64,000 nt of DNA from IMGVR_UViG_3300029267_004162:186001-250000; one strand, 5' to 3'. Positions 2,624-35,799 are shown, counted from the stretch's first letter. Made by a program: numbers and translations. The notes: a model not told the origin generated them from the letters alone.

Positions 2624-2939
2624 CCTGGTGAGAACCTTCTAGTTTGGTCGTGATCAGGTCAAACAAATAACAGCAGGAAGCCCCCAAAGCTGCATCACAA
2701 AATGGGTTTACTATTACTAACGATCCACCCCCCAGCCAACTAACCCCAGACACCAGAAAACTGGCTACTGTTCCTGTACACATGGCACAAACCAGTTGAT
2801 CCCGAAAAAAACGAATACGCTTTCTTAGGTACACTCGGATAACCCGAATAACACATATCTTAGAGTACATCGCCACAAAAGTAAGCCAGTACGAGACCAG
2901 AGCAAAAACCAGTATTCGACTAGGGTCAAAAACCATCAC
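2613..2939 (-). CDS. small membrane protein, DUF1360-like
   Basis: hydrophobic helices and LVCAMCTG (CxxCxG) motif. Confidence 0.5.
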   Translation of the reverse strand: MMVFDPSRILVFALVSYWLTFVAMYSKICVIRVIRVYLRKRIRFFRDQLVCAMCTGTVASFLVSGVSWLGGGSLVIVNPFCDAALGASCCYLFDLITTKLEGSHQDAN

Positions 2940-3733
2940 AAGACCTTGGTTAGCTGGGTTTTCAATTTGTGAAGCGTTTTATTACGAATCTGACGAACCC
3001 GCTCTTTGGAAATCCCCAAATCTTTCCCAATAGTATCCAAAGTAGGCGGCTTTACGTCGTAAGTGTAGGACTGTCTCAAAATAAACAACTCACGTAAAGA
3101 GAGACCGTTGGCGGGGTCGTCAAGAATCTGCCGTATCCGATCAATAGCCCATTCCAAACTTGGGGTGGGCGGCGGTGTTACTAAGGTAGTTGGGAGTATA
3201 GCATCTTCCGTATTCAAAGAATAGCACAGGGGGCGGTGAACTTTCTGACGAGCTAGAATCCGAAGGATGTCCGTATAAATAGCCTTAAAGGCATAAGAAG
3301 AAAACCGGAAACCTCGGTAGGGGTTAAACCCCCAAAGACATTTTAGTAAAGTGAGCGTCCCATCACCAACAAGATCATCTCTCTGCTCGTGATGCCCCCA
3401 AATTTTCCTTCGCACAGTGGCAAAAACTAGCCCTATATTGATCTCACAAAGGGATGCTCGCAGAGCCATAAAGCGTTCGATCAAAACAGATAATCTCGAC
3501 AGCTCCACACCAGTGATTTCTTCTGAGCCCACCTCTTTTATCAATCGACAAATCTGTACTCGCACCCCATGAAACTCGTGAAACTCGTCTCGCTGGTCTA
3601 TGTCGGCAATTTCTTCTGCTTTCCCCTCGAATCCAAAGAAACATTTTTTCCTTAGAACCTCAGATTCTACAGTCTCGCCATGAAGATAACAAGGTAAAGT
3701 GAACGAGGGAACAATTTGGACTTTCTTTGACAT
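2936..3733 (-). CDS. sigma-70 family RNA polymerase sigma factor
   Basis: region 2 (NIGLV...FNPYRGFRFSSYA) and region 4 HTH (TLDTIGKDLGISKERVRQI). Confidence 0.9.
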   Translation of the reverse strand: MSKKVQIVPSFTLPCYLHGETVESEVLRKKCFFGFEGKAEEIADIDQRDEFHEFHGVRVQICRLIKEVGSEEITGVELSRLSVLIERFMALRASLCEINIGLVFATVRRKIWGHHEQRDDLVGDGTLTLLKCLWGFNPYRGFRFSSYAFKAIYTDILRILARQKVHRPLCYSLNTEDAILPTTLVTPPPTPSLEWAIDRIRQILDDPANGLSLRELFILRQSYTYDVKPPTLDTIGKDLGISKERVRQIRNKTLHKLKTQLTKVL

Positions 3734-3738
3734 ATAGG

Positions 3739-4851
3739 TTATTTCGACAATGTTTGGATAAACTTAGACTCGACCTGAGTTTTTACAAGTCCCCAGAACT
3801 GGGCTTTGTCAGATTCACCAAAACCGCTGACATCAAAAATGTTGAAAGGAACCGCAGCCCCGCCCACCCGATTTTTCGCTTTAGTTCCTCCAAACTCCTT
3901 ACCGAAGACACCATCAATTACCAGTCTAGCATCACGTGTGCTCTGTTGTCTAATGCGAACAGAAGCCATTAGAGCATTTTCCACTAAGCCGTAGACTACA
4001 ACCAAACCAACCCCTTCAACTTGCAGGAATTCTTCAGCCAGAAGAGACAGGCAAGCTTTGTGGTCGGGGTTGATAAAACCAATACCGGTTATGAAATTGG
4101 GGGCGTGAGGCTCAAGCCGGTTTTTCCACCCCTGCATCAAGTAATCCATTACATACGAAGGGATTTGGTAATTTACGATCTGGTCTAAATCATCTTCGCT
4201 AGCGTATTGACTAGCGAATTGGTATGCACGAAAATCCCCTGGAGTCACGTTATCAGATCGAAAATCCCTAGTATCTGTTTTAATCGCCACAGCCAACGCA
4301 GTAGCAAGATCTTGTGTTTCCCCAGACAAGAAGTCATGATCCCCTTCACGCAGATAAGCAACTATCTGGTGTCCCAAATTACAAATCAAAGTAGAGGTGG
4401 CTCCTACCATATCTACGATGTAAAGACAGTCCTCTGCATGTTTTTGATCGGTGCGGTGGTGATCAATTACCAACTTCGGTGCAGGAATCGAACCTAAGCA
4501 AGAAATATTGGAACTACCTGGACTACAATCCAACAGTACAATAACTGAGTCGTTCCAATCACACTCTTGAAGTGATTTAGAACTTAGTTGATTCAACGAA
4601 ATATCCAGAACCGATTTCATAGCCATATTTCGATGATCCCCGATCGGACCAAAGTGACAACCTACTATCGACTCTACGCCCAGCATCTTAAGAAGGAATT
4701 CCAGACCCATAATCGAGGCCATAGAATCCGGATCAGGGGCGTCATGACTGAATAGAAACCACTTCTTGGTCTTATTCGCTTCTACTAAAGCCAAAAACCC
4801 CTCAAATTGGGCTTCAACTACTGGGTTGGGTTTCCAGGACGCGATATCCAC
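3739..4851 (-). CDS. DHH/DHHA1 family phosphoesterase
   Basis: HDAPDPDS, LLDC, IDHH, TDT motifs and C-terminal GG..GGA. Confidence 0.85.
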   Translation of the reverse strand: MDIASWKPNPVVEAQFEGFLALVEANKTKKWFLFSHDAPDPDSMASIMGLEFLLKMLGVESIVGCHFGPIGDHRNMAMKSVLDISLNQLSSKSLQECDWNDSVIVLLDCSPGSSNISCLGSIPAPKLVIDHHRTDQKHAEDCLYIVDMVGATSTLICNLGHQIVAYLREGDHDFLSGETQDLATALAVAIKTDTRDFRSDNVTPGDFRAYQFASQYASEDDLDQIVNYQIPSYVMDYLMQGWKNRLEPHAPNFITGIGFINPDHKACLSLLAEEFLQVEGVGLVVVYGLVENALMASVRIRQQSTRDARLVIDGVFGKEFGGTKAKNRVGGAAVPFNIFDVSGFGESDKAQFWGLVKTQVESKFIQTLSK

Positions 4852-4963
4852 ATTCTTCTCCAGCTAGTGACCCATTTCTTCTCGGACAATCCCATCCGCA
4901 ACCGCCGCAAGCGTACGTGTTCCGTAGAAGCTAACGACGAAACGACTCAACCTACACATCTAG

Positions 4964-5566
4964 CTACCGTGGCCGCTTGGGTCGCGCAAAATGCGGTCTG
5001 CTCACGCAAGTCTCCGTGGGCAAATCGCTAGCTAGTAGCTGCTGAAATTCTTGACACCACTTGCGATGCACTGCTGCTAGACTGGGGTTTGGCAAAGCAT
5101 CACGCGCACGCTTAGCTTCTTTCACTGCTTCGACCGCTCTGGCAGCAGCTTTCTTTGCTTTTGCTCTGTCAGGATCAGCTATTCGCTTACACACCCACTC
5201 GCATGAAACCCTCTTCGCCCCAGCTGCGTCATACGCATACTGAGCCTGCTGATATACTCGGTTTTCGTCAATAGCCCGGTATAGCTCATTACAAGCCTCT
5301 TCAAAAGCAGTCCACGAAGGGGCGTCTTTCCAAGCCTCGGCTAGAACAGCCGCTGAAACATCTAGATGTGGTTTATCTAGTGCCGCAAACTCAGCCGCAG
5401 AAACCTCCGCTGCTCTAACGTTCTCATCCGTGGGTCTTTGCCTGGCTACTTCCGCGGCACTCTTAGCTGCAATATTGCACGTCGCCCAGTACTCTGCGGC
5501 TGTATTCTCGTACAACAACGCGTCCAATAGCTTTTTTATCCGACTAAAGAACATCGTTTCCTCCAA
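4964..5566 (-). CDS. hypothetical Ala-rich helical protein
   Basis: 200-aa ORF; GGAGG precedes the internal ATG. Confidence 0.5.
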   Translation of the reverse strand: MEETMFFSRIKKLLDALLYENTAAEYWATCNIAAKSAAEVARQRPTDENVRAAEVSAAEFAALDKPHLDVSAAVLAEAWKDAPSWTAFEEACNELYRAIDENRVYQQAQYAYDAAGAKRVSCEWVCKRIADPDRAKAKKAAARAVEAVKEAKRARDALPNPSLAAVHRKWCQEFQQLLASDLPTETCVSRPHFARPKRPR

Positions 5567-5985
5567 TTGTTGAATTCCACCGCTGTAACGCGTTACATTA
5601 CCCCAGCTTACAAGCTAAACCCTACCGCGATGCTTCAAGTTCCCGACTATTGAGCCTGCAATAGATCGTTGACAACCTGACTTAACTCCTTGACCCGGTT
5701 GTTCAATAGAATTACCGCTACTATCGTCACGCCCAAGGCAAATCCCCAAAACCAAGTTACCCCAACTTGCGGCGATACACATTTTAGTTTCATCATTTAC
5801 CTCTTATTGCGACTGCGCTAAATGATAGCCACGAGACGTTTTATACCGGCATTGTGCATCACAAGGGTAAGCGGTATCCGTTTTCAACGACACAGCGGCT
5901 GCTCGCCTACCGAGGGCATTCCACCTTCTGGGGGCGTTCCACCCGACACTCACGTTCACCACACGTGTTTGCCTGCCCCGATTCT

Positions 5986-6294
5986 TCATCGCCTTTTCAC
6001 CTGTTCACTACAAAATGTTTCAAAACACTTGATCGCTTCGAGTACATCAAATTTCTCACCGAAAAGGTACTTATCCAAGAGTGCTGTTCGCTGTTCATCT
6101 ATAGCCTTACCAAAATTGGCTGCCGCCTCCTGGACAAGGATATCTACGTGATGGACCGCATGTACTCTATGAAGTGCCAACTCCAATTTTTCTTCTGCGG
6201 CCTTTATGATCTCTACCAGACGTTTCTGCAAATATTCCCACTTCGCAACGTCCATCTGCGATTGCGGCTCTTCATCCATTAGCCATCTCCTCAA
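5986..6294 (-). CDS. hypothetical protein
   Basis: helical 102-aa ORF; GAGGAG before internal ATG. Confidence 0.55.
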   Translation of the reverse strand: MRRWLMDEEPQSQMDVAKWEYLQKRLVEIIKAAEEKLELALHRVHAVHHVDILVQEAAANFGKAIDEQRTALLDKYLFGEKFDVLEAIKCFETFCSEQVKRR

Positions 6295-6319
6295 GTCACC
6301 GGTTCTATCTTAGGCGCAA

Positions 6320-7033
6320 TCATACGCCTCGTTTGTTGTCCCACAGTAGCACGTGAGTGCGAAAACTGACCTTGAAACCAAATTCGATGGCGGCCTGAAT
6401 TAACCAATCTGCTTCTTTCCTAATCTTACTCGCGGTGGTCCCCAAAGGCATCAACCAAACATCGTCAAAGGATAGATTCAATTTTTTAAGCCAAATTTCC
6501 AGTGCTTGAACTTCATCACGATTTCGTACTGGAGCTTTGATGGTGTAGTTTCGTGCCCACACAAAATCTTCTCTCATGTAGTCTTGTTTGACCCACTCGA
6601 ATTTGGGACTAAAAACCATTCGCAAAACAGGGGTAACCCCCGATTCTTGGTGTTCCCAATTAGGGCCAGTTCTAGGGAGTCGGGTCGTCCACACCTCAAG
6701 ATATTCACCAGCAGACCCATTCTTAGGACCAATAGTCCCATTCGTCTCAATCTCAAAACGATGGCCCAACGGAGCACAAAGAGCAATTACTCTCTGTATA
6801 GTCTCTTGGTAAAGCATAGGTTCCCCACCGGTAAACACACAAAGCTGTGGCCCCTGGATTACTTTACGAGCCAATTCCTCTGCAGTAATCTGGACTCCTC
6901 CATCCTTTTTCTGGGCGTAAGGTGTGTCACACCATGCGCATTTGAGATTACACCCAGCAAAACGGATAAAAGTAGCGGGATGCCCAGTCGAAGGACCTTC
7001 TCCCTGGATAGACACGAAATGCTCATTCAACAT
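6320..7033 (-). CDS. queE: 7-carboxy-7-deazaguanine synthase (radical SAM)
   Basis: EHFVSIQGEG...FIRFAGCNLKCAWCDT, FTGGEP, IETNG, SPK, HVLLW; ATG at 7033 preferred over the track start. Confidence 0.92.
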   Translation of the reverse strand: MLNEHFVSIQGEGPSTGHPATFIRFAGCNLKCAWCDTPYAQKKDGGVQITAEELARKVIQGPQLCVFTGGEPMLYQETIQRVIALCAPLGHRFEIETNGTIGPKNGSAGEYLEVWTTRLPRTGPNWEHQESGVTPVLRMVFSPKFEWVKQDYMREDFVWARNYTIKAPVRNRDEVQALEIWLKKLNLSFDDVWLMPLGTTASKIRKEADWLIQAAIEFGFKVSFRTHVLLWDNKRGV

Positions 7034-7475
7034 GAGTATCAGCCTCTGTATACCAGACGAAACTATAGGAAGTCCATTCTCGTGGTCCTGTTGTTCCCAC
7101 CACTTCAAACCCCTGCCCCTGGTAGAAATCTAACAGCCCATACTCCTCAAAAGAATCCACGGTTAACCGAGCACAGTCTAATTGCACGGCCCGCTGTTTG
7201 GCAAATTCAACTAAACAGGCACCCCGACCTTCACCCCTGGGGGATACAGCCAAAGTCAAAATGTGCAATTCGTCATCTGGTTTATGTTTGAGACACAGAG
7301 CCCCAGTAACTTGGTTGTCCTGATCGTCCCCAAGAAGGAGCCAAAAATCACCTTGTTCAATTTGACGGCTAATCCAATCTTCCCGGTCCCAACAAAAACC
7401 CGGCATATCAAGATGAAATTGTTCATTCAGACACGCGATGATCGAAAGATGTTGCACACCCGCTTGGACTATCAT
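7023..7475 (-). CDS. GNAT family N-acetyltransferase
   Basis: LAVSPRGEGRGACLV acetyl-CoA motif, FYQGQGF; ATG 7475 overlaps the upstream stop (ATGA). Confidence 0.8.
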   Translation of the reverse strand: MIVQAGVQHLSIIACLNEQFHLDMPGFCWDREDWISRQIEQGDFWLLLGDDQDNQVTGALCLKHKPDDELHILTLAVSPRGEGRGACLVEFAKQRAVQLDCARLTVDSFEEYGLLDFYQGQGFEVVGTTGPREWTSYSFVWYTEADTHVE

Positions 7476-7657
7476 GGTAACATCCATTGTAATGTGATGA
7501 AAGTCGCAACCGCCATTCCCCACAGCCAAAATAAACCAGCACTGATCCTGGGTTGGAATCGGTTTCTAGTCATCTTAACTGTGATACTGTATCCAACTCC
7601 CGCTGTTATCGTCAAACACAACCACTTGATAAACAGGATAAGCAGATTTGTTATCAT
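7472..7657 (-). CDS. small two-helix membrane protein
   Basis: two hydrophobic segments, ATGA-coupled on both sides. Confidence 0.55.
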   Translation of the reverse strand: MITNLLILFIKWLCLTITAGVGYSITVKMTRNRFQPRISAGLFWLWGMAVATFITLQWMLP

Positions 7658-7920
7658 CGTGTCTTCCTGGAATTTTTCTGGTATTTCCCTAAATCAAGCT
7701 CCACCAAAGCCTTCTTCACCGCTTTAGCGGTGGGTTTAGTAGAATATCGTGTGTCCAGTGAGTGAGCCGCCAAATGGCCTTCTCGTTCTGCCTTCAAATA
7801 GACAGCGGTCTGTTTCCATTTGCTAACCGTCTTCCTTTGCCAGATCACAGCGATAGTGGTGATGATACCATAAACCCCTAGGACAATTTCTTTTATCTGA
7901 TCAATTACGTCCACTAACAA
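7654..7920 (-). CDS. small protein with N-terminal TM helix and basic tail
   Basis: AGGAG RBS before TTG start. Confidence 0.55.
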   Translation of the reverse strand: MLVDVIDQIKEIVLGVYGIITTIAVIWQRKTVSKWKQTAVYLKAEREGHLAAHSLDTRYSTKPTAKAVKKALVELDLGKYQKNSRKTR

Positions 7921-7929
7921 GTGAATCTC

Positions 7930-10422
7930 CTAGCAAGCAGAGTATGAACAAGCATAACACTTAACGCATTTGCCTTCACTTACAACCAAACGATTACCAC
8001 ATTCTGGGCACCGAAGTTCAAACGCGTCATCGGCTTGGTTACTACCACCAAACTGCCCAGCCGTTTCTAATTTGTCTAATTCATCAGCCGACAAAGTAGA
8101 TTCACCCAACAACAGAGCCTTTACACCGAATTTTTCTTTAGCAATAGCATATCTGCTTAGAGCCTTGGCTAGTGCATCCGCTAGTGACCCAATTTTGCCA
8201 TCTTTAGATGGAAGTTGCAAGGTACTACTAATTCCACTTAACTGACGGATAATGTACTTAAGAGAACCCCCGGATCGCAGATACAGACTACTCAACCGGC
8301 AAATGGCTTCCAAATCAGCGGCTGCGATTTCTCCACCTTTCCCCAATTGAGCAAAAACTTCTAACTCCCGGTCTTGTTGGGGGTCAATTGAGACGTGAAT
8401 ATGCAGGTTCCCGAATGGAGAAGTCTGTCTGAGTTTAATAGAAGCAGTGAATCGAGGAGTGGGATCCGGATCAATTTGTCTGGATTTGCTTAAATCTTCC
8501 ACCCTGTTTCCCATAGACATGGGTTGACTGGACCGTGATCCATCGCGATAAATCGTAATTCCTTTGCACCCCAAATCATAGGCTAATTGGTACGCCCGGT
8601 CAACTGCACCAGGCTCACAATCCTTATCCAAATTCGCAGTCTTTGAAACTGCGTTATCGGTGAACTTTTGTACAGCCGCTTGCATCATTACGTGCTGATC
8701 AGCGGTGATATCAGCAGTAGTTAAAAACACGTCTTTGATTTGCTGCGGGATTGATTCCACGTCCCGGAGAGACTGATTTTTAGAAACCTCTATCAACACT
8801 TCATCAGTTAACAACCCCTCTTGCCTCAATACTTCTTGGAAAACTGGGTTGATTTCCAACAAGGGTTTGCTGTCCTCCCGTTCCTTCATAATATTACGAT
8901 CGAACACCAAAGCAAACAAGGGTTCTACTCCCCCGCTACACCCAGCCAGTATAGAAATAGTCCCAGTAGGAGCGACAGTCGTGATACGAATGTTTCTACG
9001 CCGGGGCGCCCCTTCATCTTTGTATTCATTATAAGCCCCATAGTACCCCCGGTTCTCACCCAACCACTCCGAAGCTTCGTGAGAAGTCTCTTGGATAAAT
9101 TGCATGATCTTTTCGGCCAGATCAAAACTCTCTCCCGAACCATATTTAATTCGTAATTTATAAAAGAGATCAGCCAAGCCCATAATACCTAACCCAATGT
9201 CCCGAGTCACAGCGGTTACTTTGGCTATTTCTGGAGTTGCCCAAGAACTAGTTGAAACCACGTTATCCAGGAATCGAGTAGCGTCGAGGGTGCATTGGTG
9301 TAAGGCGTCCCAGTCAATTTGGGGGATTCCATTCGCATCTTCGAATACAAAGGCAGACACGTTAATCGAACCTAAGACGCATGCGCCGTTCGGGGGGAGC
9401 GGCGTCTCGCCACACGGGTTCGTGGCTTCAATTTCGATGGGCAGTGGGAAATCATTGTTCACGCGGTCGATAAAGCATAGCCCCGGTTCCCCGGTTTGCC
9501 AAGCGTTCTGTACAATGATTTCCCATATATCGGCTACAGTTATGACTTGTTCTTGAGGAGTACCATCCTCAACTGGGAACAAATCATCAAGCGAATAACA
9601 CGAATTGATAAGTTTATAATCGTGTATTCCATTGGCCGACACCTCCGCCGCCTTGCGACAAACATCGATCAAACGGTGAGGCAAGTAGTATTCTGCGTGG
9701 TTTCGCGGGTTAACCACCCGTAAAGGATTTTCTGGTTTCTTCCGAAGTTCATACATGAACCACTCCGGAATCTTCACAGAAATATTGTATGAATTAAATA
9801 GGGCGAGGTCTTGTTTAGCAAACAGGAATTTCAGTATGTCCACGGCAAAGACATTCATCATTCCCATGTTGGCCCCCCGACGCTTACCACCCTGGGAAAT
9901 GGCGTCTGTTACAGCATTTAACACCCCCCAGAATAAGATGGGTCCGCCTGCCCGGCCCCCGGTGCTAGAAACGATGTCCCCGGTTGGGCGGAGACGATCC
10001 AGGGGGATGCCCGTCCCGCCGCCCCCCGCTTGAATGTCACAAATATCCTTGGCACATTTCATGATGGACTCGCGGTCATCATCGAGAGCCAAAACAAAAC
10101 AGGCGGACAACCCCAACTTCCCGTTTCTTCCCGCGTTCATCAGACACGGAGTGTTGGGAAGAAATTTCCCAGTAGCCATTAAATCATGGAAATTGGCGTA
10201 TAACTCAGTTAAATCCCGTTTTCGTGATATCCATCCCTGTTTAGCCTCTGTTGAAGCTATCGCCCACGCTACTCGGCGATAGACATCTTCAGGTTCTTCT
10301 GTCGTCTTGCCCTCGGCATCTCGCGCTACATAGCGAGTTTCCAGCACCTTTTTGGCGTTAGGAGTTATCTGAGGCGCGGTTAATTCGACATTTGCTGGGG
10401 GTGCAACCGGTATATTTTTCAA
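7930..10422 (-). CDS. nrdJ: class II adenosylcobalamin-dependent ribonucleotide reductase with C-terminal TSCPD/Zn-ribbon
   Basis: FLPNTPCLMNAG, LSACFV, RRGANMG, TNPCGE, APTGTIS, SKTAN, YRDGSR, terminal CPECG...CYACSYSAC. Confidence 0.95.
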   Translation of the reverse strand: MKNIPVAPPANVELTAPQITPNAKKVLETRYVARDAEGKTTEEPEDVYRRVAWAIASTEAKQGWISRKRDLTELYANFHDLMATGKFLPNTPCLMNAGRNGKLGLSACFVLALDDDRESIMKCAKDICDIQAGGGGTGIPLDRLRPTGDIVSSTGGRAGGPILFWGVLNAVTDAISQGGKRRGANMGMMNVFAVDILKFLFAKQDLALFNSYNISVKIPEWFMYELRKKPENPLRVVNPRNHAEYYLPHRLIDVCRKAAEVSANGIHDYKLINSCYSLDDLFPVEDGTPQEQVITVADIWEIIVQNAWQTGEPGLCFIDRVNNDFPLPIEIEATNPCGETPLPPNGACVLGSINVSAFVFEDANGIPQIDWDALHQCTLDATRFLDNVVSTSSWATPEIAKVTAVTRDIGLGIMGLADLFYKLRIKYGSGESFDLAEKIMQFIQETSHEASEWLGENRGYYGAYNEYKDEGAPRRRNIRITTVAPTGTISILAGCSGGVEPLFALVFDRNIMKEREDSKPLLEINPVFQEVLRQEGLLTDEVLIEVSKNQSLRDVESIPQQIKDVFLTTADITADQHVMMQAAVQKFTDNAVSKTANLDKDCEPGAVDRAYQLAYDLGCKGITIYRDGSRSSQPMSMGNRVEDLSKSRQIDPDPTPRFTASIKLRQTSPFGNLHIHVSIDPQQDRELEVFAQLGKGGEIAAADLEAICRLSSLYLRSGGSLKYIIRQLSGISSTLQLPSKDGKIGSLADALAKALSRYAIAKEKFGVKALLLGESTLSADELDKLETAGQFGGSNQADDAFELRCPECGNRLVVSEGKCVKCYACSYSAC

Positions 10423-10504
10423 AGGAACACTCTATTAAAGGTTATTGTTTATGTGGTATGATTTATAACGAACCAATACTTCTAAGTTCATTCATTGCAA
10501 CTTC

Positions 10505-10860
10505 TATCTCTCCTGACCAAAGAGTAACCAAAGCGTTTGCGCCGGGGGTTGTACTTCAAGTTGATCCCCGAAACAGACTTGTACTACCCCGACCTCCCCC
10601 ACTAGGGTTCCACTGCCAAAGACATCCTGGCAGAGACGAGCCCTTTTAGGTTGAAAAACAGACTGCCCAAAACTAAACCCATCCACCTCGTGTTGACGAC
10701 TATCAAGATCACACCTCGCACACCGGTTGACGGAGGGGCCAATAGCTCCATCTCCTCCCGGCGGGAGTTTGGTATTGGCTATGAAATAGTCAAGACAGTA
10801 AGAGTTGTGAGACCTGAGAATCAGGACGTATCAACTCTTACAACGTACATCAGGAGATGG
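10505..10860. ncRNA. closed ~355-nt structured RNA domain (unassigned; partial group I-like core)
   Basis: terminal helix 10509-10516/10850-10857, 10-bp stem 10798-10807/10832-10841, several internal hairpins, no convincing ORF. Confidence 0.55.
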
Positions 10861-11037
10861 ACATACAACCCCTAGAAGGGGTTCAACCAAAAGGTAAAAA
10901 TTTGTCCATTAATGATTAAAATTAATCAGTATTACGCATATAAGGGTTTATTGCCGATTATTGCGCATCGCCGAATTGGGGGGCGGGGGGAACGGGGCAT
11001 CACTCTATGGATGCTTGGGTCCGTCCCTTGATTAAAT

Positions 11038-12111
11038 TTAAGAATTAGAAGCAATTTGTAATGCAGGTAACCAAATCTGCATTACTACTTTGTTCCTGAG
11101 ACACGCTTCAGTCCCAGGGAGGACAAAAATCGATCCACCAGTCCATCGCAATAAAAAGAAGGACTTGTGGTAACTCCCAAGACAAGATCCGTTAAGCGTC
11201 CAAGGGGCGTCAACGTGCACACGCTCCACATCGGACGGTAACTTCAAATTAACTTCAAGAGAGCTTCCTAATGGTGATCCAACCCACCCACCACCGCAGT
11301 TAATGGCAGCAGCGGGGAATTCGATCAATGAAACCAACCTACTATCCCTGTAATATTCAATTAGTAGAAATGATTCGTTACCTGGTTCGGACAGGCATAG
11401 CCGAACCGAAAACGCATTACATACTCTACGCAATGGATTCCGCCGGTCGGAGTGTGTCGCTCCTGAACGGTGCCTCCTTTTATACTGCATAGGGGTTGTT
11501 GAATGCCTGAATGATCGCCCTTTTGGGTGGCTACTTGTTCGACTCGGATTAACTTTTTTACCGGTCTTTACTTTCGGAAACATCGTTCCACTTACCTGAC
11601 CACGACTGCTACACGAGTTAAACTTAGCCACAGAATCATTTCCTGCCCGGTCTCCACTGCTCTCGGAAGGGTAACGCGAAATATGGATCGACGAGGCAAG
11701 GACTTTGACATTGGCCACCACTACGGAATTGACTTCCGGGGACGGGCTCCAACGCCTAGTTGTAGACACGTGGTGCGCACCGCAATAACCACGTAATTTG
11801 CCAGCTACGCTTTGGGCTATCTCTTCTGGCTTGAGATATCCTGATTCCTTCTGGTGATGTCGCGGCATCAGACCAAAAAGGGGATGAGAAGCTCGGTAGG
11901 CACATGTAGTTGGTATATCTTCCAACCTGCCCTGTGTACTGCTCGGCTCCGGAGTCAGTGTACTGCGATAGTCATAATCTATCAGCAATAGTGGGATAGA
12001 TTTGACGGTAGTCGTGTCAGGCGTGAGTACCACCCCTGACACAGTCGTCATGGCAATAGGTTCGTCGTTAATCAGTTGACTAACACGTGCTCTGCTATAT
12101 ACCAGGGTCAA
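11038..12111 (-). CDS. unexplained 357-codon ORF overlapping the structured RNA
   Basis: long stop-free frame, but no RBS, no recognisable motif and Ser/Arg/Pro/His-rich composition. Confidence 0.3.
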   Translation of the reverse strand: MTLVYSRARVSQLINDEPIAMTTVSGVVLTPDTTTVKSIPLLLIDYDYRSTLTPEPSSTQGRLEDIPTTCAYRASHPLFGLMPRHHQKESGYLKPEEIAQSVAGKLRGYCGAHHVSTTRRWSPSPEVNSVVVANVKVLASSIHISRYPSESSGDRAGNDSVAKFNSCSSRGQVSGTMFPKVKTGKKVNPSRTSSHPKGRSFRHSTTPMQYKRRHRSGATHSDRRNPLRRVCNAFSVRLCLSEPGNESFLLIEYYRDSRLVSLIEFPAAAINCGGGWVGSPLGSSLEVNLKLPSDVERVHVDAPWTLNGSCLGSYHKSFFLLRWTGGSIFVLPGTEACLRNKVVMQIWLPALQIASNS

Positions 12112-12740
12112 ACCTAAACCTACGTCTTGTCGCGATGTATTCCATTGATTAATAAACTCGCGATCTCATTCCCCACAACAAGTGGGCAACCCAGATGATA
12201 TCGACCTGGGACTGGATCAATCAATGAATTGTCTAAAACCACATTCGCATTGGGAATCGAACCCAATTTTACCATTACGAATAAAACTGACGCCGCCTAA
12301 CAGACGGCGTCGGAACTCTACCAACACATGGCAGGTGAGCTACATATCGTCATTTGGATGTTCAATAACTCCACCCCCTCTACTACATTGTGAAATCTGC
12401 CAGTCACCACATCATAACCAAGACAGTCATCGGGGTCAGTATGACCCTCTAACCACGGCAATAGAAAACAACAAACTGACACACTGGTTACAGATAACAC
12501 ACCAGGTTCGCCAGATACAACAGCAGGCACACCATCTTCTATTGGCTCACTGGTCATCTGTGCGGATGTCTCACGTAAGCTTTCGATGATTCCAAACCCA
12601 ACTAGAAATCCAATTAGGACAGGCAGACCATTAGTAATGATCCTTCTCATCAATCGGTCCCTTCCTTACTGTCATCTGTTTTGGGGGTATGACAAAGCAA
12701 AGACGCCGCGAAGATGCGCAACACACATTATGACACATAG
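11040..12740 (-). ncRNA. large, highly structured RNA of unknown family
   Basis: many nested helices (e.g. 11367-76/11633-42, 11527-33/11625-31, 12014-21/12035-42, 12289-98/12302-11), T-loop GGGUUCGAUUCCC at 12249-12267, G-U pairs favour the minus strand; ends approximate. Confidence 0.65.
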
Positions 12741-12751
12741 CAAATCACCGG

Positions 12752-13123
12752 CTATTGTTCGTTACTACCTTCAACTCCGCGAGAGATACGTTCTGTTGTA
12801 CGAATCTTCAGGTTCATCAAAGCAAGTTTAACACTCGTTAAAGCCTTCGCGTTTGCTTCACAGGCGTATTTGCCTTGTTGAAACCCTTCTAAGCGGTCAA
12901 TTACAACAGCCAATAGAGATTCATTTGTCAGACCGTTTGGACCGGCTTCTTGAAGGGGACCGTGTTGGAAGTTAACGGTGACCCCCTGCTCTGGACTCAT
13001 TTTAGGCCCCCAGTTTATATCGTACACATGACAAGCGTTTCCGGGACCGGGTTCATCTATAACTTCAATAGCTATACTGTTTCGTTCTTCATCCGCTATG
13101 TGTGTGGTAATTGTCCGTGACAC
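12752..13123 (-). CDS. tad1: Tad1-family (Thoeris anti-defence) signalling-molecule sponge
   Basis: GPGNACHVY...FQHGP...NG...LLAVVIDRLEGFQ.G.YAC..NA.AL...RT.ERI.RGVEG matches the Tad1 pattern over its whole length. Confidence 0.82.
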   Translation of the reverse strand: MSRTITTHIADEERNSIAIEVIDEPGPGNACHVYDINWGPKMSPEQGVTVNFQHGPLQEAGPNGLTNESLLAVVIDRLEGFQQGKYACEANAKALTSVKLALMNLKIRTTERISRGVEGSNEQ

Positions 13124-13220
13124 GACTCTTCTACCTCACCTTAAATGCCATTGTTAGATGATGGATCGTTCGTTCAAACTTAGCCATTATGGTCGTAGCC
13201 GCCAGCGATAAGCATTTGGT

Positions 13221-13781
13221 TCACTCCGGATCCGGTGGGGGTGAATTATTAGGACGGGAAACAGGTGGTGGTACTGGCGGGGTTGGGGACTTGGGCAAGA
13301 TGTTACCAAATCGTTTGGTCGGGGGGATAACGCTGTAAGCATCCAGGAAGTCTATTCCTGTGCCATACAAATCCACGACAATCGCATAGGTCTCTGGATT
13401 TTCCTGTCGCCACTTACGCTTCAGTGACAGGGGTACGATCCAGAAATAATCCCTGTGATCTGCATTAACGGTAACAATTTGCATACCGTTAAAGAAGCTT
13501 CGAATGAAGAAACCGGGTGTTAATTTCTGGGGCCAGTCTTCCGGTGGGTTTTTGGTGAGAGGTTTTATAGGTGTGGTGATGAAACACCCCCGAGGCTGGC
13601 CGGGTTCTGTTTCCTTGGTCACGTCTACTAACCAAAAGGCATTCTCTAATTCTTTGATGCGGTGTTGGTTATCGTCTAACCAGATACGGTCTGGGACTGC
13701 GATTTTCCCCAGGGTGGCTGAACAAATGATGTTACCTTTTGTGGGGTTATCATTGCGAAAAAACTTGATTACTGTTTTCAA
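13221..13781 (-). CDS. hypothetical protein with Pro-rich C-terminus
   Basis: 186-aa ORF in operon. Confidence 0.6.
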   Translation of the reverse strand: MKTVIKFFRNDNPTKGNIICSATLGKIAVPDRIWLDDNQHRIKELENAFWLVDVTKETEPGQPRGCFITTPIKPLTKNPPEDWPQKLTPGFFIRSFFNGMQIVTVNADHRDYFWIVPLSLKRKWRQENPETYAIVVDLYGTGIDFLDAYSVIPPTKRFGNILPKSPTPPVPPPVSRPNNSPPPDPE

Positions 13782-13790
13782 CGCGACACC

Positions 13791-14081
13791 TTACACTTTC
13801 AGAAGTGAATTTATGAATTCAGCAATTTCTTTTAACATTTCTAATAGCTGGCGAGAAGCAGAGGAATGGGCATCCTCTACGGAAGGCGAACTGGCTTCTG
13901 TGGTAATGAAATTATCTTGCCATATTTGGAGAGATAGTCTTACCTTATAAACGAACCTATCTTTTTCTTTTTGTTGGCTAACGTTATACACCAGCTTCTT
14001 CTTTTTAGACAACTCCGTTGCGTCAACACCCTGAGTTTCCAAAAACCGCATGACAAGATCTGGCCTGTACGCTCTCGCCAT
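13791..14081 (-). CDS. hypothetical protein (possible dsRBD-like alpha-beta-beta-beta-alpha fold)
   Basis: 96 aa; FVYKVRL...EASSPSVEDAHSSASRQLLEML pattern. Confidence 0.5.
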   Translation of the reverse strand: MARAYRPDLVMRFLETQGVDATELSKKKKLVYNVSQQKEKDRFVYKVRLSLQIWQDNFITTEASSPSVEDAHSSASRQLLEMLKEIAEFINSLLKV

Positions 14082-14083
14082 AA

Positions 14084-14947
14084 CTAGATCCTATTCGTAG
14101 TGATATCTAGTATTTGAATGTCACCCACCAAAAGCAAATCCAGAATAGTGTTCGCTAGAGTGGGGGCTTGTTGACTGATTAGCGGTTGGATCTCAAACGA
14201 ATCCACTGCTCCGGTACAACTAAAGGTTTGCACATACTCATAGTTGGGTAACAATTCAATCTTTACTGTGCTACCTATAGATCCGATTACCCGAATACAA
14301 GCGGATTGGATAACACCCGCCAACCCGATCTGAATCTGGGCTCCACTGGTTTCATACACTGGACCAAAATCATTCACTACCAAAGTCAGATCGGTCGAAG
14401 AACTTAGGTGGTAATGGAAAGGCGGGATTTTCTTTTCCACCGCCTTGGCAGCATCAATCACGCTCAATTCTGTTGGTTGGACAATCCAATACCAGTCATC
14501 AGGGTCTGATCCAGAGAGCCATTGCATATGACCTATGACGAGGAACTCATACTCCGCCTCTAACAGGCCCAAATCTTGATAGGTCAAAATGTCCATGTTT
14601 TCATCAGACAGGAACCCTTCGACTATCATGTATTTGGATTCTGAGCTTCTTGTAGTGGTTCCTAGAATCGAGTAGGCCACAACCGTGAAGGAAGCAAGAG
14701 ACCCTTTGCTGACAGTAGGCAACGGTAAAGTGATTAGTTGCTGTTCTTCGATCACTTTACCAGAGGCATACATGTATTTGAATCCAACCGATTCAGAAGA
14801 GTGTACAACCAAAGTGCTGTTGTTGGTGTCTATCTGAATCGGTGGTGAACGGTAGACACCTCTCGGAATGATGTGTTGCATCCAAGCATTTAGTTTGTTG
14901 AAGGGCATAGGGGATAAGAAATCCCACCATCTTAGTTGTTTAGCCAC
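14084..14947 (-). CDS. probable virion structural (baseplate/tail) protein
   Basis: beta-rich, S/T-rich; IPRGVYR-type N-terminus. Confidence 0.45.
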   Translation of the reverse strand: MAKQLRWWDFLSPMPFNKLNAWMQHIIPRGVYRSPPIQIDTNNSTLVVHSSESVGFKYMYASGKVIEEQQLITLPLPTVSKGSLASFTVVAYSILGTTTRSSESKYMIVEGFLSDENMDILTYQDLGLLEAEYEFLVIGHMQWLSGSDPDDWYWIVQPTELSVIDAAKAVEKKIPPFHYHLSSSTDLTLVVNDFGPVYETSGAQIQIGLAGVIQSACIRVIGSIGSTVKIELLPNYEYVQTFSCTGAVDSFEIQPLISQQAPTLANTILDLLLVGDIQILDITTNRI

Positions 14948-15098
14948 GGCTAACCCTACCTGTATTGGTTTTAACTGCTGGTGGTTGAATGGCCATATCC
15001 CATTTGGTTGGGGAGTACGAGGAAAGTAGTGTGGATCTTTGGGATAAACAAAGGTTGATACCCTCGGTCTAAGGGAGTGGGATAAACTCGTTTCTTTG

Positions 15099-17078
15099 TC
15101 ATCCTGCGACCAAAGCCCAAAATGGGATTCTGGTAGTCAATGTGGTAATACGAATATGAAAAACCTCATTGGCGTTCATATGAAGAATGGCTTCGCTGGG
15201 TAAAGTCCACCGTCTGTTTTGAACTCTGGCAGCGACTTGGGGGCAAGCGTCGGTAAGGGAAGTCTCCGGGGTACACGTATATTCTGTGGACCCGATACTG
15301 ATTAGAACCTCCACATCAGTAGGACTGCGGAATTCTTGATCAGTGTTCAGAACGATGTATGGAGCGGAACCAACAGATTGAACTATCAATGGACGTGTTT
15401 GGTAAATTCCCCGAATCAGAGAGGTACTCTCTGGATCCCATTCACATCCATTTCCACCCAACATAGGGTTGGTAGTGCAATCGAATAGGATGGTATCTTG
15501 GTCGTTGTGGAATTTCTGTTGCAGTGCAGAGATAATGGGGCGATCATCCTGTAACGATGCAATTCCACTGCCTCGGCTAGTTTTGATTGTGGCCAACCGT
15601 AGACCTGGGGGAGAAACTTCTTCGTTGAAAACGGCGAGGATGGTGTTGATTGAAGGCCCACCTGTCCCAGAAATTGAGTCAACGCGAATCTTAGTTAGGG
15701 TCTTGAAAGTGTTGGTGCCTTCGACATACTGATCGGGGAAGTATCCTACATGACTGGTGGGGGCTTCAGTCCATGCGCTAGAATCATTTAGGATAACCGT
15801 CTCAGATATGTTGGTACCAGAGGCATCAGTACCGGATAAGGTAACAACAACATTGGCAGTAAAGGAATTAGTTTCCGCGATTCCAATTATCAATTTAGAG
15901 GGGAAGGGCAACTCAACGTTGACGGAAATGCCCTCCGGTACTTGAAAATCGGACAACAAAGCAACTTCTGTGGCCAAACTAGGTGTCAGTCGAGTTGTAC
16001 CAGTTGAGTTGACAATGACTCCCATGTCCAAGGGGAAATGGACGAATTCTTTCGTGGAGTGAATCTGTTGAGTCAAATCAACGGCTGCTCCCTCCGAAAT
16101 CACGACTTCTTTCTCGACAGGGGCTAACACTTCAAATTCTGTGGTTGTTCCGGGGATTGGTTTAACTTGACCCGCATACACAGTGGTATATTCGAATATG
16201 ATATTGCTGCCCCCGGCGTGGAAAAACTGAACCTGTTTTTGAGAAGGCGCGAATGCAGAGTATTTTTCCACACCGCTCTCGGAAGTTTCGATGAAAGAGT
16301 TGGGGAAGTAGGACAGAGTGGCTTGTTTGAGGGCACCAACACTTTCGAACTGGGTACTGGGGATAGTATCAGCAACTCGTTTTCCATGAAAATGTCTTTC
16401 CATGTTACCAACTACAATCCCATCACCGGTAATCAAATCCCAGAAACGCAAGTCATTTTTCAGGGTTAGGTCGTTGAAACTAATCGCATGCGGGTTAGAG
16501 GGTGTTTGTTCCCCCGTTCCCAAATCACTGCGGTGGGTGATATCAACCGGTGTAGCCCATCTGCGAATAGAAACTGTGTAAGACCCACTGAATTCAATTG
16601 TCCAAGAATCATCAGAGGCTATGTATGCCAAGACAGCGATTACTTCTTCATTGGTTTCCTGGACATAGGAACCTATCGGAACTGTTTCGATTTCTCCGGT
16701 TCCAACGATCCGAGTTTTTATGATCTCATTGTAATCAGATAGCTGATCGTCCTGCTCTTCTTCAACAAATTTTGCTACCAGAAAATGATCGGCTTTGGTG
16801 CTGGGGAATGTGACCTCGGTAGTCTCAAATGAATGGAGGTTACCATTCTCAAACAGAACAGTCCCCGAGTGAACGATGACTCCCGTTAAAGACGGATTGG
16901 GTTCAACATAGAAGGGGCTTTCCAATTGAGGGACACTAGGATTATCCGGATCGATGATTCCAGGAGTAGAGAACTCGGTGGTCCGATTGATTAATTCCCC
17001 CTCGATAGAAGATTGGAGAAAATGAATCAAGTCAGAAGTGACTCTGATCCCGACTTTTTGACAATTGATTCTATCCAC
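15099..17078 (-). CDS. probable virion structural (baseplate/tail) protein
   Basis: 659 aa, acidic and beta-rich, PSNPHAISFNDL motif seen in tail proteins. Confidence 0.5.
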   Translation of the reverse strand: MDRINCQKVGIRVTSDLIHFLQSSIEGELINRTTEFSTPGIIDPDNPSVPQLESPFYVEPNPSLTGVIVHSGTVLFENGNLHSFETTEVTFPSTKADHFLVAKFVEEEQDDQLSDYNEIIKTRIVGTGEIETVPIGSYVQETNEEVIAVLAYIASDDSWTIEFSGSYTVSIRRWATPVDITHRSDLGTGEQTPSNPHAISFNDLTLKNDLRFWDLITGDGIVVGNMERHFHGKRVADTIPSTQFESVGALKQATLSYFPNSFIETSESGVEKYSAFAPSQKQVQFFHAGGSNIIFEYTTVYAGQVKPIPGTTTEFEVLAPVEKEVVISEGAAVDLTQQIHSTKEFVHFPLDMGVIVNSTGTTRLTPSLATEVALLSDFQVPEGISVNVELPFPSKLIIGIAETNSFTANVVVTLSGTDASGTNISETVILNDSSAWTEAPTSHVGYFPDQYVEGTNTFKTLTKIRVDSISGTGGPSINTILAVFNEEVSPPGLRLATIKTSRGSGIASLQDDRPIISALQQKFHNDQDTILFDCTTNPMLGGNGCEWDPESTSLIRGIYQTRPLIVQSVGSAPYIVLNTDQEFRSPTDVEVLISIGSTEYTCTPETSLTDACPQVAARVQNRRWTLPSEAILHMNANEVFHIRITTLTTRIPFWALVAG

Positions 17079-17089
17079 AATAAATCTGC

Positions 17090-17356
17090 CTATGTGAGTT
17101 TGTCCGACATATCATAAATCCGAATATCAGAGACAGCGAAATCGATAGCATCTCCGACGATGTCCAGGTTTTCTCTAGTTACCCAATCGGAAAACTTGTG
17201 TTGTGTGTGGGCAATTTCATATCGAATGGTAGCACAAATGGGGTATCGTTTGGCTATCGCTTCGAGGATTATGCGTTTTGCATTTCTTTTTCCGCCTGCA
17301 TCACAATAGAAAAGCCACCTGCACCCATCGTTTTCTGAGCAGTATCGTTTATGCAA
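17090..17356 (-). CDS. hypothetical protein
   Basis: 88-aa ORF overlapping the upstream stop. Confidence 0.5.
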   Translation of the reverse strand: MHKRYCSENDGCRWLFYCDAGGKRNAKRIILEAIAKRYPICATIRYEIAHTQHKFSDWVTRENLDIVGDAIDFAVSDIRIYDMSDKLT

Positions 17357-18320
17357 TTTCTACTTCCAGTTGAGCAGGCTCGAAGTTTTCATATACCGCT
17401 TGCAACAAAATACGTCCTGGAATCCTGCCTCTCCCCTCATATGTGAAGGTGCCTATTTTACGGAGTTGTAAAATTTTGGGGTCTGAGGAGGTTACACTCA
17501 AAGGTATGGCATCTTGTCGGCCCGTTAAAACGAACTGGTGTTTGGTGCCAGTCAGAATAGACTGTGGGCCTGACCACATTGGGTTCCCGTCTAGCCCGAA
17601 TTCGACAGGGACTTCGGTTATGGGGGCTTCACCCAGATTGACATAATCAACTTGTTCGAAGAATAATTCCAGTGTTCTCTCTCCCCAATGAATCTGAGAG
17701 AAGGATGCGCGAACTTCCTCTCGACGATTGATAATGTCGCTGGGTTGAGTCATCTTGGGGAAACACAACTGCCAATTTTGTTGCGGGCTCAGGATTCTTC
17801 CCCCAAAGATCGCGGGGATGTATTTGGTGATTATGTTATCTGCTAGGTGGCCCAGATCTGCCATCACTGATCCGGAATGGGCTGTAGTGAACAGGATGCA
17901 ATTGACCTTATAGGCACTACGAAAAGCCACCTGAGCCCTTTGGACTATGTGCCGGTTTCTTTCAAAACCAGTATTGAGATCCGGCTGTAACACAGGAATC
18001 CCCAGCACAAACTGAATAGCCGGGGTGATCTTCTCTATTTCCTGGTTGTGAACTCGGAATTGAATCTTGACTTCCCCCATGTTTTCATCTGCATCCGTAG
18101 CGTAATTTGCTAGGTTGGGATTGGCTTTGATGAAAGTTCGGTGTTTCCCAGATTTAGACAGGAATTCCCCGAACAGTTCCTCTAAGATAATCTTGAGGGT
18201 TGCTAGGGGTTTGCTCTGTCGAGGGGTATCTGCAACCAGTGCTTCAGTTTTACTCCGGGGAGTGTCGGAGAAAGGGATTTTGAATCTGGCAAGGTTGTAC
18301 GGTGTTGCGTGACTAGCCAT
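17349..18320 (-). CDS. hypothetical, probably virion (neck/tail) protein with C-terminal Ig-like segment
   Basis: 323 aa; SVTSSDPKIL Ig-like motif. Confidence 0.45.
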   Translation of the reverse strand: MASHATPYNLARFKIPFSDTPRSKTEALVADTPRQSKPLATLKIILEELFGEFLSKSGKHRTFIKANPNLANYATDADENMGEVKIQFRVHNQEIEKITPAIQFVLGIPVLQPDLNTGFERNRHIVQRAQVAFRSAYKVNCILFTTAHSGSVMADLGHLADNIITKYIPAIFGGRILSPQQNWQLCFPKMTQPSDIINRREEVRASFSQIHWGERTLELFFEQVDYVNLGEAPITEVPVEFGLDGNPMWSGPQSILTGTKHQFVLTGRQDAIPLSVTSSDPKILQLRKIGTFTYEGRGRIPGRILLQAVYENFEPAQLEVEIA

Positions 18321-18951
18321 TCGTCGTGCTCTCGTTCGTTGGGTCAGGCCCCGACCATCCAGCGGTCGGCGTTAAGCCAACCCTAAACTCATGGAGGTTC
18401 TGTTCTAAAGCATGATCGCCTTCAATTCGATTTGCGTAATACAGCATGCAGGATGCGAAAAGTTCCAAAGGATTCCCCTCGTACGCAACGATGGACAAAT
18501 CCTCATGACCCTTAAGCATGAGTTGCACGGCCCATTCTGAATCACAGTCCCCCTGGCTGTATTCGTTTTGTCTGCCAAAGTAGCTCCCCTGTTTTCCATA
18601 GACGATTTTGGCCACGCCATATTGTAGAAGCTGAGCGAAACAACGGTGACAGGGGAATCCGGTCACATAGATAGTCGAACCTTCCAGATTGGACCCGTTG
18701 GCATTAGCAAAAGCGTTTTCTTCTGAATGGGTAGAGAAGTAGTATTTGTCCGGCCTCTTATCCCAAGGAATAAGATCATCTCGGCAACCTCGGGGTGCTC
18801 CATTATAGCCAAGGGTCAAGATACGATTTTTCTGATCAACGAACACACACCCGTGTTTCGTATCTGGGTCGGGAGACCGCATGGCCACCAAAAAAGCCAT
18901 CGTCATGAAATAATCGTCCCATCCAGGCTTGTCCGTGAATTTCTTATTCAT
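18313..18951 (-). CDS. dCMP deaminase (ComEB family)
   Basis: WDDYFM, RSPDP, GYNG, HSEENA, FPCHRC. Confidence 0.9.
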   Translation of the reverse strand: MNKKFTDKPGWDDYFMTMAFLVAMRSPDPDTKHGCVFVDQKNRILTLGYNGAPRGCRDDLIPWDKRPDKYYFSTHSEENAFANANGSNLEGSTIYVTGFPCHRCFAQLLQYGVAKIVYGKQGSYFGRQNEYSQGDCDSEWAVQLMLKGHEDLSIVAYEGNPLELFASCMLYYANRIEGDHALEQNLHEFRVGLTPTAGWSGPDPTNESTTNG

Positions 18952-19274
18952 TGCGCAATTATCCTCTTGATCAACCTTGGTACTTCTTTTCGGGCGAAGA
19001 CTACCAGTTTGTGAGAATCAACATGGAGAGATAGAAACACGTCCAGGCAAAGAAGCAACCAGATCAGGCTTTCCTCTATTCGCCACCCTCTTCGAAATGC
19101 TCTATAGCAAGAGATTGTTTGCGTTTCCGTGGGAAAGGCTTTGAAATTGGCCTTGAAGTGTTCCGTAAACTCTTGTAAATCTTGGCTTCCGATACTGTGA
19201 TAGTAAGATTGTACACACCCCATCATCGGATTAGGTGATGTCGGTAGCGAAATCCTTGCTCTTGTCATTACCAT
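18948..19274 (-). CDS. hypothetical protein
   Basis: ATGA-coupled to the deaminase. Confidence 0.5.
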   Translation of the reverse strand: MVMTRARISLPTSPNPMMGCVQSYYHSIGSQDLQEFTEHFKANFKAFPTETQTISCYRAFRRGWRIEESLIWLLLCLDVFLSLHVDSHKLVVFARKEVPRLIKRIIAQ

Positions 19275-19297
19275 TTAGTTTGAGAAAGCACCCATTT

Positions 19298-19807
19298 CTA
19301 TTTACCTGCACGAATTGATGACCCAATGACCCTAAGATTCTCTTGTTGAACTTGAACTGCTTGTCTACTAGAAGTGAGGTCTTTTGATATCCTCTCGATC
19401 ATTTCATACACCCCCCGCATTCTTTCCAAGAGAGTAAGGGGTTCTTTTAAAATACCCCACAAAGCGGCTTCTCTCGTTTCATTGTTCCGAAACTTAGTAA
19501 ACGCTTCTTTGTCATAGATGTATGTTTTGGCGCGTTGGCAAAGAATGTTTATTTCCGTATAAGCGATGGTTAGCCGGGAGTATACCAATCCAAGTCGAGA
19601 CAATCTAGCGGCCCATTCTTGGATGGTTTGGTTGGCCCGGCGAATGGATTTCTTATTGGGGTCTAAAAGAGGAACGTCGATTTGACCATATCTAAGAATT
19701 TCACGTTGAATTTCTTCTATGTCAATTTTCTTAGATACACGTTCAACCCGTCCTATAATATTGGCGATCCGGGGGTCCACTCGAATAGAGTTTAGGGCAT
19801 CTTGCAA
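19298..19807 (-). CDS. helical coiled-coil protein, possibly UvsY-like recombination mediator
   Basis: all-helical 169 aa; resemblance only. Confidence 0.4.
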   Translation of the reverse strand: MQDALNSIRVDPRIANIIGRVERVSKKIDIEEIQREILRYGQIDVPLLDPNKKSIRRANQTIQEWAARLSRLGLVYSRLTIAYTEINILCQRAKTYIYDKEAFTKFRNNETREAALWGILKEPLTLLERMRGVYEMIERISKDLTSSRQAVQVQQENLRVIGSSIRAGK

Positions 19808-22918: not shown

Positions 22919-22943
22919 TTGTGGTTGGTTCGTTTATTCTTAT

Positions 22944-23615
<672 letters not shown>

Positions 23616-23632
23616 TTACTGGGAGAGGAACT

Positions 23633-23848
23633 ATGAAGGCCGGTACACCCCCAGAACGGGTGGCGGCGGAGGGCATTACTCTTTGTAAGAGTGTTAGGTG
23701 TCCCCTTCGTCAAAAATGTGACAGGTGGTCTGCGGGAGAGTTCCAGGAGCGAGAATGTACTTTCTACGTTCGTGATCCCTGCAATCTTCAGACCGGAAAA
23801 TGTACTTTTTTTCTCGCGCGGGTGTCTCGCAAGGCGGAGGAGGTGTAA
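23633..23848 (+). CDS. small Cys-rich protein
   Basis: ITLC...CPLRQKCDR...C..F; GAGG RBS. Confidence 0.6.
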   Translation: MKAGTPPERVAAEGITLCKSVRCPLRQKCDRWSAGEFQERECTFYVRDPCNLQTGKCTFFLARVSRKAEEV

Positions 23849-35783: not shown

Positions 35784-35799
35784 TTTGGGGTCATACGTC

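Follow-up and report, generated by a model that had tools for sequence, protein, structure and literature searches.

How can a reading frame remain open for 357 codons in a phage genome and carry no protein-like signal? This question is raised by a minus-strand open reading frame (ORF) at positions 11038-12111 of the window, by which we mean the whole 64,000-nt stretch analysed here; it corresponds to positions 186,001-250,000 of the 262,650-bp IMG/VR record IMGVR_UViG_3300029267_004162. The record is rated complete by CheckV, 89% of it is coding, and matches in metagenomes place the phage in sediment and seawater. Both ends of the record lie inside one acidic GAGGAAGAGG... coding repeat, which suggests that the record is probably circularly closed; although nominally linear, it probably represents a circular, or else a permuted, genome that was opened inside the repeat gene. 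Genome positions 1-533 and 262,455-262,650, outside the window, form one tandem repeat (GAGGAAGAGGAG...) that codes for an acidic E/D tract.

The ORF is located in a gene-poor island (10423-12751) whose 2329 nt, if the ORF is disregarded, form the longest non-coding gap in the genome. The minus strand carries all genes from 522 to 19807. The downstream neighbour is nrdJ (7930-10422, minus strand; PF02867, PF00317 and PF12637), which encodes a class II ribonucleotide reductase, and upstream lies a homologue of the sponge protein Tad1 (Thoeris anti-defence 1; 12752-13123, minus strand). The latter matches PDB 8kbb (E 6.4e-16) and phrog_2428, and PF24729 is precomputed for the gene and its homologues, while a local Pfam scan gave no match for it; its homologues elsewhere show at most 53% identity and are not syntenic. 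Between tad1 and a terminator-like hairpin (described below), there is a 111-aa ORF (12318-12653, minus strand) with an N-terminal hydrophobic helix, AAGGAAGG 8 nt before the ATG at 12650, and a weakly positive codon LLR (+0.03), which is probably a real small gene. Besides NrdJ and the Tad1 homologue, the nearby genes encode a dCMP deaminase, a QueE-like enzyme, an acetyltransferase and a sigma factor, and a replication module (clamp, helicases, DNA polymerase, primase, exonuclease, UvsX-like recombinase and RNA ligase) occupies window positions 20-60 kb.

Even the closest homologues share no more than 46% identity with the phage NrdJ. Both of the genomic contexts that were inspected are bacterial (Phycisphaerae-like), and the homologues with a name come from MAGs of Phycisphaerae/Planctomycetota or Patescibacteria. 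This kinship may point to the host, or to a gene captured long ago. The phage lineage, whose nrdJ resembles nothing more closely than this, is isolated.

A frame too long for chance

The ORF runs from a TTG at 12111 (first ATG at 12051) to a TAA at 11038-11040 on the minus strand, and the full open frame spans 375 codons from stop to stop (11041-12165), bounded upstream by an in-frame TGA at 12166-12168. An earlier note on this DNA had reported the same frame, as 357 codons plus about 18 upstream of the TTG. Public gene callers also call the ORF (entry P0001). About 19 stops are expected in 375 codons, and 0 were seen. Over the ORF span, by comparison, the other two minus-strand frames contain 18 and 27 stops and the plus-strand frames 18, 12 and 23, and outside the ORF, stops are as frequent as usual in its own frame, with 20 among about 400 codons (about 5%).

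To put a number on this openness, the probability that 375 codons stay open was calculated as 2e-9 from the real base composition, and as 3e-9 to 6.5e-8 per run from Markov models of order 1-2, in which the highest value came from the model trained on the ORF itself. The equal-codon estimate given in the earlier note, (61/64)^357 or about 4e-8, thus had the correct magnitude. Scaled up to the roughly 242 runs of the locus and 27,000 of the genome, these values give such an open frame a chance probability of about 1e-6 to 2e-5 locally and of at most 2e-3 across all 262,650 bp. The frame is far too long for chance, and the earlier judgement that it is unlikely to be accidental holds up.

The same note had argued against a shadow cast by a gene on the plus strand, and this also stands, since the plus-strand frames carry the 18, 12 and 23 stops mentioned above and no gene lies beneath. 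The longest ORF counted in our shadow set has 224 aa; a 257-aa ORF at 22940-23713 (minus strand), which we read as a shadow, was counted in the gene set and not in the shadow set. This 257-aa ORF is antisense to a 223-aa ORF at window 22944-23615 (plus strand), with both frames open, and it scores as a shadow (-0.22 bits/codon), showing the length that antisense shadows can reach here. An alternative genetic code or recoding was ruled out, as all three stop types are present in the other frames. A decayed or frameshifted gene in the other frames was likewise ruled out: the other frames of the island (10423-12751) gave no family matches, the island shows no paralogy to the remaining genome, and no paralogue of the ORF was found in any frame of the genome.

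Coding statistics and the predicted product

Apart from its openness, the frame looks non-coding. Its codon score (stops excluded) is -0.077 bits/codon, compared with 0.115 +/- 0.068 for real genes (n=208) and -0.071 +/- 0.090 for shadow ORFs (n=169), which places its codon LLR 2.8 sd below the real-gene distribution and equal to the shadow-ORF mean. An iid real-codon model gave +0.126 +/- 0.031, with the ORF 6.5 sd below, and a random-open null, having the base composition of the ORF with stops removed, gave -0.127 +/- 0.032, with the ORF at the 94th percentile. No codon-position (3-base) periodicity was detected in the ORF: its position-by-base chi2 is 7.1, as for a random-open frame (P = 0.65; mean of the simulations, 9.1). 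Real genes cut into pieces of 357 codons (n=60) have a median of 36.7 and a minimum of 14.7. The other ORFans of this phage without a PHROG match are all coding-like, with LLR values of 0.06-0.15 and chi2 values of 13-80 per 357 codons. The G+C and 4-mer content of the ORF is not foreign.

The amino acid composition tells the same story, correlating at r = 0.93 with a random translation and at 0.735 with the proteome, in line with the S/R/P/H-rich, off-frame-like composition previously described. A Shine-Dalgarno core (GGAG/GAGG/AGGA at -18 to -4) was found at none of the seven candidate starts of the ORF, confirming the reported lack of a ribosome-binding site (RBS); because the motif is also missing from about half of the real genes (it is present at 84 of 176 first ATGs genome-wide, or 48%, against a background of 10%), this is a weak test. 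The predicted product is basic (pI 9.7) and S/R/P-rich, its helical hydrophobic periodicity falls below the 10th percentile of real proteins, and its AF2 model has a pLDDT of 31 and almost no secondary structure. Overall, the frame behaves statistically like random sequence that has lost its stops and nothing else, as the suggestions of a "frame kept open" or a "nascent gene" predict, and the product is, as had been claimed, unlike an evolved protein.

Homology searches gave a consistent picture. No homologue of the ORF product was found among about 15 billion proteins, Pfam, PHROGs, PADLOC, PDB and GenBank phages, nor in the ESM Atlas together with 5.8 billion clustered proteins, and tblastn and blastn against GenBank phages returned no match to the ORF. 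The earlier description of the product as free of any motif is confirmed. Two protein-database searches returned only the identical protein and a second protein, P0002, and a full HMMER pass over 1.84 billion representatives gave nothing beyond the latter. P0002, matched with an E-value of 4e-11, is a repeat protein of 1034 aa encoded on a eukaryote-like contig. It contains at least five near-identical repeats, each of which matches residues 60-104 of the ORF at about 39% identity, and it is to these repeats that the E-value is due. One repeat alone is far from significant, and P0002 was rejected as a homologue. Scans of IMG/VR, JGI metagenomes and GTDB genomes found only 100% identical assemblies or nothing, and four DNA runs yielded one identical 52,846-nt contig and no variants. 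As the lineage is isolated, the absence of homologues is weak evidence.

Hairpin-rich ends and a candidate replication origin

Folding was measured as the MFE z-score of minus-strand pieces of 421-466 nt against dinucleotide shuffles (100 of them for 11880-12345). The two ends of the ORF stood out, with z = -5.2 at 10690-11110 and z = -4.4 at 11880-12345; the values in the ORF body were -2.35 (11110-11530) and -0.98 (11480-11900), and those of two control genes were -1.0 and +0.2. A scan with 200-nt windows gave the same picture with both strands alike, and this excess on both strands means that the strand of the structure cannot be assigned. No family match at the gathering score was found in 10300-12900 with Rfam 15 (covering GOLLD, ROOL, OLE, group I/II introns, riboswitches, tmRNA and tRNA); with the cut-off relaxed to E < 10, the sole match was an unrelated sRNA at 20 bits (E 0.39), for which the gathering score is 112. 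The structured RNA that the earlier note had placed under the ORF is therefore borne out at both ends (z -4.4 and -5.2) but not in the body (z -1.0 and -2.35), and it has no Rfam match.

The 5' zone (11880-12345, minus strand), which extends over the ORF start, contains a hairpin at 12014-12042, several stem-loops in 12120-12290 and inverted repeat I9, and its 200-nt windows reach z-scores of -3 to -4 on both strands. A terminator-like, 10-bp G+C-rich hairpin followed by AGTTTTATTC (12289-12311, minus strand) would end the upstream tad1/111-aa unit. Between this hairpin and the ORF, there is a weak sigma-70-like promoter match, TTGATT-18-TATCAT (12195-12224, minus strand), which is a lead only, as three such sites were found against 3.3 expected in shuffles. 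No phage-specific promoter motif stood out once the k-mers of the acidic end repeat were removed; this coding repeat at the contig ends was the sole source of strongly enriched k-mers. ARAGORN called a 90-nt tRNA-Asn(gtt) at 12241-12330 (minus strand), of which only the T-arm TTGGGTTCGATTCCCAA is canonical. A tRNA or tmRNA at this site was rejected, given that no Rfam tRNA model matched and that the "anticodon arm" is the 10-bp terminator-like hairpin; the call may be a tRNA relic or false.

The 3' zone (10690-11110, minus strand) covers the ORF end and the space before nrdJ, with 200-nt z-scores of -2.7 to -5.1 on both strands and inverted repeat I1; its hairpins include one over the last ORF codons (11048-11095) and a long one at 10798-10841. 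It also holds GGGGGGCGGGGGGAACGGGG (10975-10998, plus strand), the G-richest 21-mer of the genome (from 10978 onward), which has two adjacent G6 runs and forms a C-run in the minus-strand RNA about 45 nt past the ORF stop. A patch of 78% A+T is found at 10900-10939; windows of at least 75% A+T make up 0.16% of the genome. The 21-mer and the patch are about 40 nt apart, and both fall in the spacer that separates the ORF from nrdJ.

Cumulative GC skew traces a V across the genome: the global minimum falls at window 13,149 (genome 199,149) and the maximum at genome 61,811, about half a genome apart, and both extremes adjoin large intergenic gaps. The minimum is broad, spanning about 2 kb (12.7-14.7 kb), and the island lies about 0.4 kb from it. 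The strand switches in the gene map are convergent at about 61 kb and divergent at about window 20 kb. Among the minus-strand genes, the GC3 skew is -0.05 for nrdJ and -0.09 for the ORF, and +0.23, 0.00, +0.29 and +0.16 for the next genes, so that its sign flips between nrdJ/ORF and the gene at 13221. Such a flip among genes of the same strand indicates that the skew switch is not due to gene orientation alone. The switch marks a candidate replication origin, no more than about 2 kb from the island, and the maximum at about 61,811 marks a candidate terminus. No iterons, tandem repeats or DnaA-box cluster were found, and short repeats are at chance level; hence, the origin call draws on the skew, the A+T and G-run elements and the proximity of the replication module. 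The island at this switch offers a testable origin candidate for an uncultured jumbo phage. Six minus-strand genes at 13221-19807 have a C-rich coding strand, unlike the other genes.

Readings of the open frame

Two readings fit both the non-chance openness and the lack of a protein-like signal, namely a young, weakly constrained orphan gene and a frame translated for the passage of ribosomes. A typical old gene fits the open frame but not the missing protein signal, and non-coding origin DNA does the reverse, needing an accident of 1e-6 to 2e-5. We tentatively prefer, at a little short of an even chance, a lineage-restricted orphan ORF that is kept open by selection and translated now or until very recently, and that is not an old folded protein gene. 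This reading is ranked first because it needs no new mechanism and because of the layout as a separate unit beside an anti-defence gene.

In such a layout, the terminator-like hairpin would close the tad1/111-aa unit and be followed by a hairpin-rich leader and the ORF as a separate expression unit, with the stop-codon hairpin and then a trailer rich in hairpins completing it ahead of nrdJ; the excess in folding falls in these two end zones and not in the coding body. The unit would sit in the accessory, gene-poor island of the phage by the GC-skew switch. Its product would be a basic, S/R/P-rich polypeptide, probably disordered, under little or no protein-level constraint, as expected of a very young or de-novo-like gene. 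Translation, young age, product disorder and an own transcription unit are all features that we infer. In favour of an orphan gene, the ORF shares the strand of its neighbours from 522 to 19807 and fills what would be the largest gap, and it is lineage-restricted with non-coding-like statistics, the combination that marks de novo genes or proto-genes. Against it, every intrinsic coding test fails (codon LLR, periodicity, RBS, helix periodicity and AF2), and with a G+C content of 47%, 357 codons cannot open de novo in a single step, which leaves the origin of a young gene without a clear route.

Anti-defence genes are often found among fast-evolving orphan accessory genes. The closest parallels to an orphan gene of this kind are the strain-specific pandoravirus ORFans, which have intergenic-like statistics (PMC5995976) that the ORF matches, and the bacterial ORFans reviewed in PMC12315717: like these, the ORF has no homologue, resembles intergenic sequence rather than core genes in its statistics, and is located in a gene-poor accessory region. 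However, pandoravirus genomes are G+C-rich and long random ORFs are common in them, whereas here, at 47% G+C, a random frame of 375 codons has a probability of about 1e-8, and typical de novo candidates are several times shorter. If it is a simple orphan accessory gene beside tad1, it adds one more hypothetical protein; if, instead, selection keeps the frame open but leaves its sequence unconstrained, the locus would exemplify either the birth of a very large gene de novo in a bacteriophage or translation serving purely as an RNA-protecting or remodelling device, ideas that are much discussed and hard to demonstrate.

The second reading is unlikely in its general form: a phage transcript of about 1.1 kb by the origin would be kept stop-free in one frame, its sequence otherwise unconstrained, with selection acting on ribosome transit itself, either as shielding from Rho and nucleases or for the timing of RNA folding by the origin and nrdJ. 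A 357-residue protein born from non-coding DNA in a phage of 47% G+C would be equally unusual. If selection does hold the frame open without constraining its sequence, this would be an unusually clean natural case. Rather unlikely, in our estimate, is the specific version in which translation occurs for its own sake, with stops excluded so that ribosomes can cross about 1.1 kb of an otherwise non-coding transcript, either an nrdJ leader or one heading toward the origin-like A+T/G-run segment, preventing Rho-dependent termination or RNase attack or setting the folding of the structured end zones. This version corresponds to the dual-function RNA suggested in the earlier note, in which a further idea, an RNA that encodes its own partner protein, is likewise speculative. 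Of all the readings, it alone predicts precisely the observed pattern, in which stops are selected against and no other constraint is apparent, and it agrees with a composition, codon use and periodicity indistinguishable from those of a random-open frame, with a poorly folded body between strongly folding zones, and with nrdJ downstream on the same strand. The C-rich RNA run about 45 nt after the stop points the same way, as a Rho loading site would be exposed there after the ribosomes have left. These points have to be set against the lack of an RBS, the 615 untranslated nt between the stop and nrdJ, the lack of a precedent of such size, and the absence of an evident reason for a phage to keep 1 kb of meaningless sequence.

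Known cases of this sort include the dual-function sRNAs SgrS/SgrT and RNAIII/hld, leader ORFs, and the shielding of transcripts from Rho by translation (transcriptional polarity). The likeness lies in translation, or a co-resident ORF, beside an RNA-level role, with a C-rich tract after the stop in the present locus; but leader ORFs and dual-function sRNAs have about 10-60 codons and a demonstrated regulatory RNA part, whereas the ORF here has 357 codons and no RBS.

We consider it quite unlikely that the island is non-coding origin or regulatory DNA, in which the hairpins, A+T patch and G-run act as DNA or RNA, no protein is made, and the open frame is a statistical accident. Such DNA would account for coding measures that all equal those of non-coding frames, for the lack of an RBS, homologue and fold, and for the site of the island, about 0.4 kb from the GC-skew minimum, at the GC3 flip and with the replication module 10-45 kb to the right; the G-richest 21-mer and the rare A+T patch in the 3' zone, and a folding excess equal on both strands, as for plain inverted repeats, also agree with it. 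The accident itself, however, would have a probability of about 1e-6 to 2e-5 at the locus and at most 2e-3 in the genome, even under the ORF-trained Markov model, the longest counted shadow ORF reaches 224 aa, and an origin here would have no iterons, tandem repeats or DnaA-box cluster and a skew minimum as broad as 12.7-14.7 kb. Phage origins within or next to an ORF, or primed by transcripts, are familiar, as the lambda ori lies inside gene O and T4 and T7 origins are primed by transcripts. The ORF resembles these in its position at the GC-skew switch, near the replication module and adjoining an A+T-rich patch, a G-run and inverted repeats, but lambda O is a normal conserved protein, whereas this locus has no iterons or initiator-like domain and its origin is deduced from skew only.

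A functional protein gene recently acquired from an unsampled donor of unusual composition, for example one for a basic nucleic-acid-binding or anti-defence protein travelling with tad1, is decidedly doubtful. The length of the ORF, the strand shared with its neighbours, the adjacent Tad1 gene, the basic product and the poor sampling of the lineage and its surroundings would suit such a gene; on the other side, codon-position periodicity is universal and persists in foreign genes but is absent here, the G+C and 4-mer content is not foreign, and the 1.84 billion representatives contain no match save the repeat-inflated one.

Very unlikely is a large structured non-coding RNA across the ORF, whether its class is new or already known (GOLLD/ROOL/OLE-like, or an intron), since the 1.9-2.3 kb of island without coding signal, the end zones at z -4.4 and -5.2 and the T-arm-like hairpin on the 5' side are opposed by the lack of an Rfam match, a body that folds like control genes, a strand-symmetric signal, the lack of an RT in the genome for a retroelement, intact neighbouring genes that leave no room for an intron, and an open frame left unexplained. 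GOLLD and ROOL, large ornate RNAs studied by cryo-EM (10.1101/2024.12.08.627333), are similar as large phage stretches without coding signal by a tRNA-like hairpin, but they carry no long ORF, and the present locus has no covariance-model match and no folding excess in its body. The DRT2 "neo" template RNA (PMC11974808) has a stop-free frame in an ncRNA, and thus shares with this locus a frame without stops in otherwise non-coding-looking sequence; neo, however, depends on a reverse transcriptase and on rolling-circle copying of a short template (about 120 nt), whereas here there is no RT and the frame is 1.1 kb long. RNAs linked to retroelements (group II intron, retron, DGR and DRT2-neo) were rejected, as the genome contains no RT (PF00078), an intron was rejected because the neighbouring genes are intact, and an attP site was rejected because the genome contains no integrase.

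Elsewhere in the genome, a tRNA-Lys(CTT) at window 35711-35783 (plus strand) overlaps the listed start of the ORF at 35727-37340, and ARAGORN calls a tRNA with a 4-base anticodon (cata) at genome positions 20,421-20,513.
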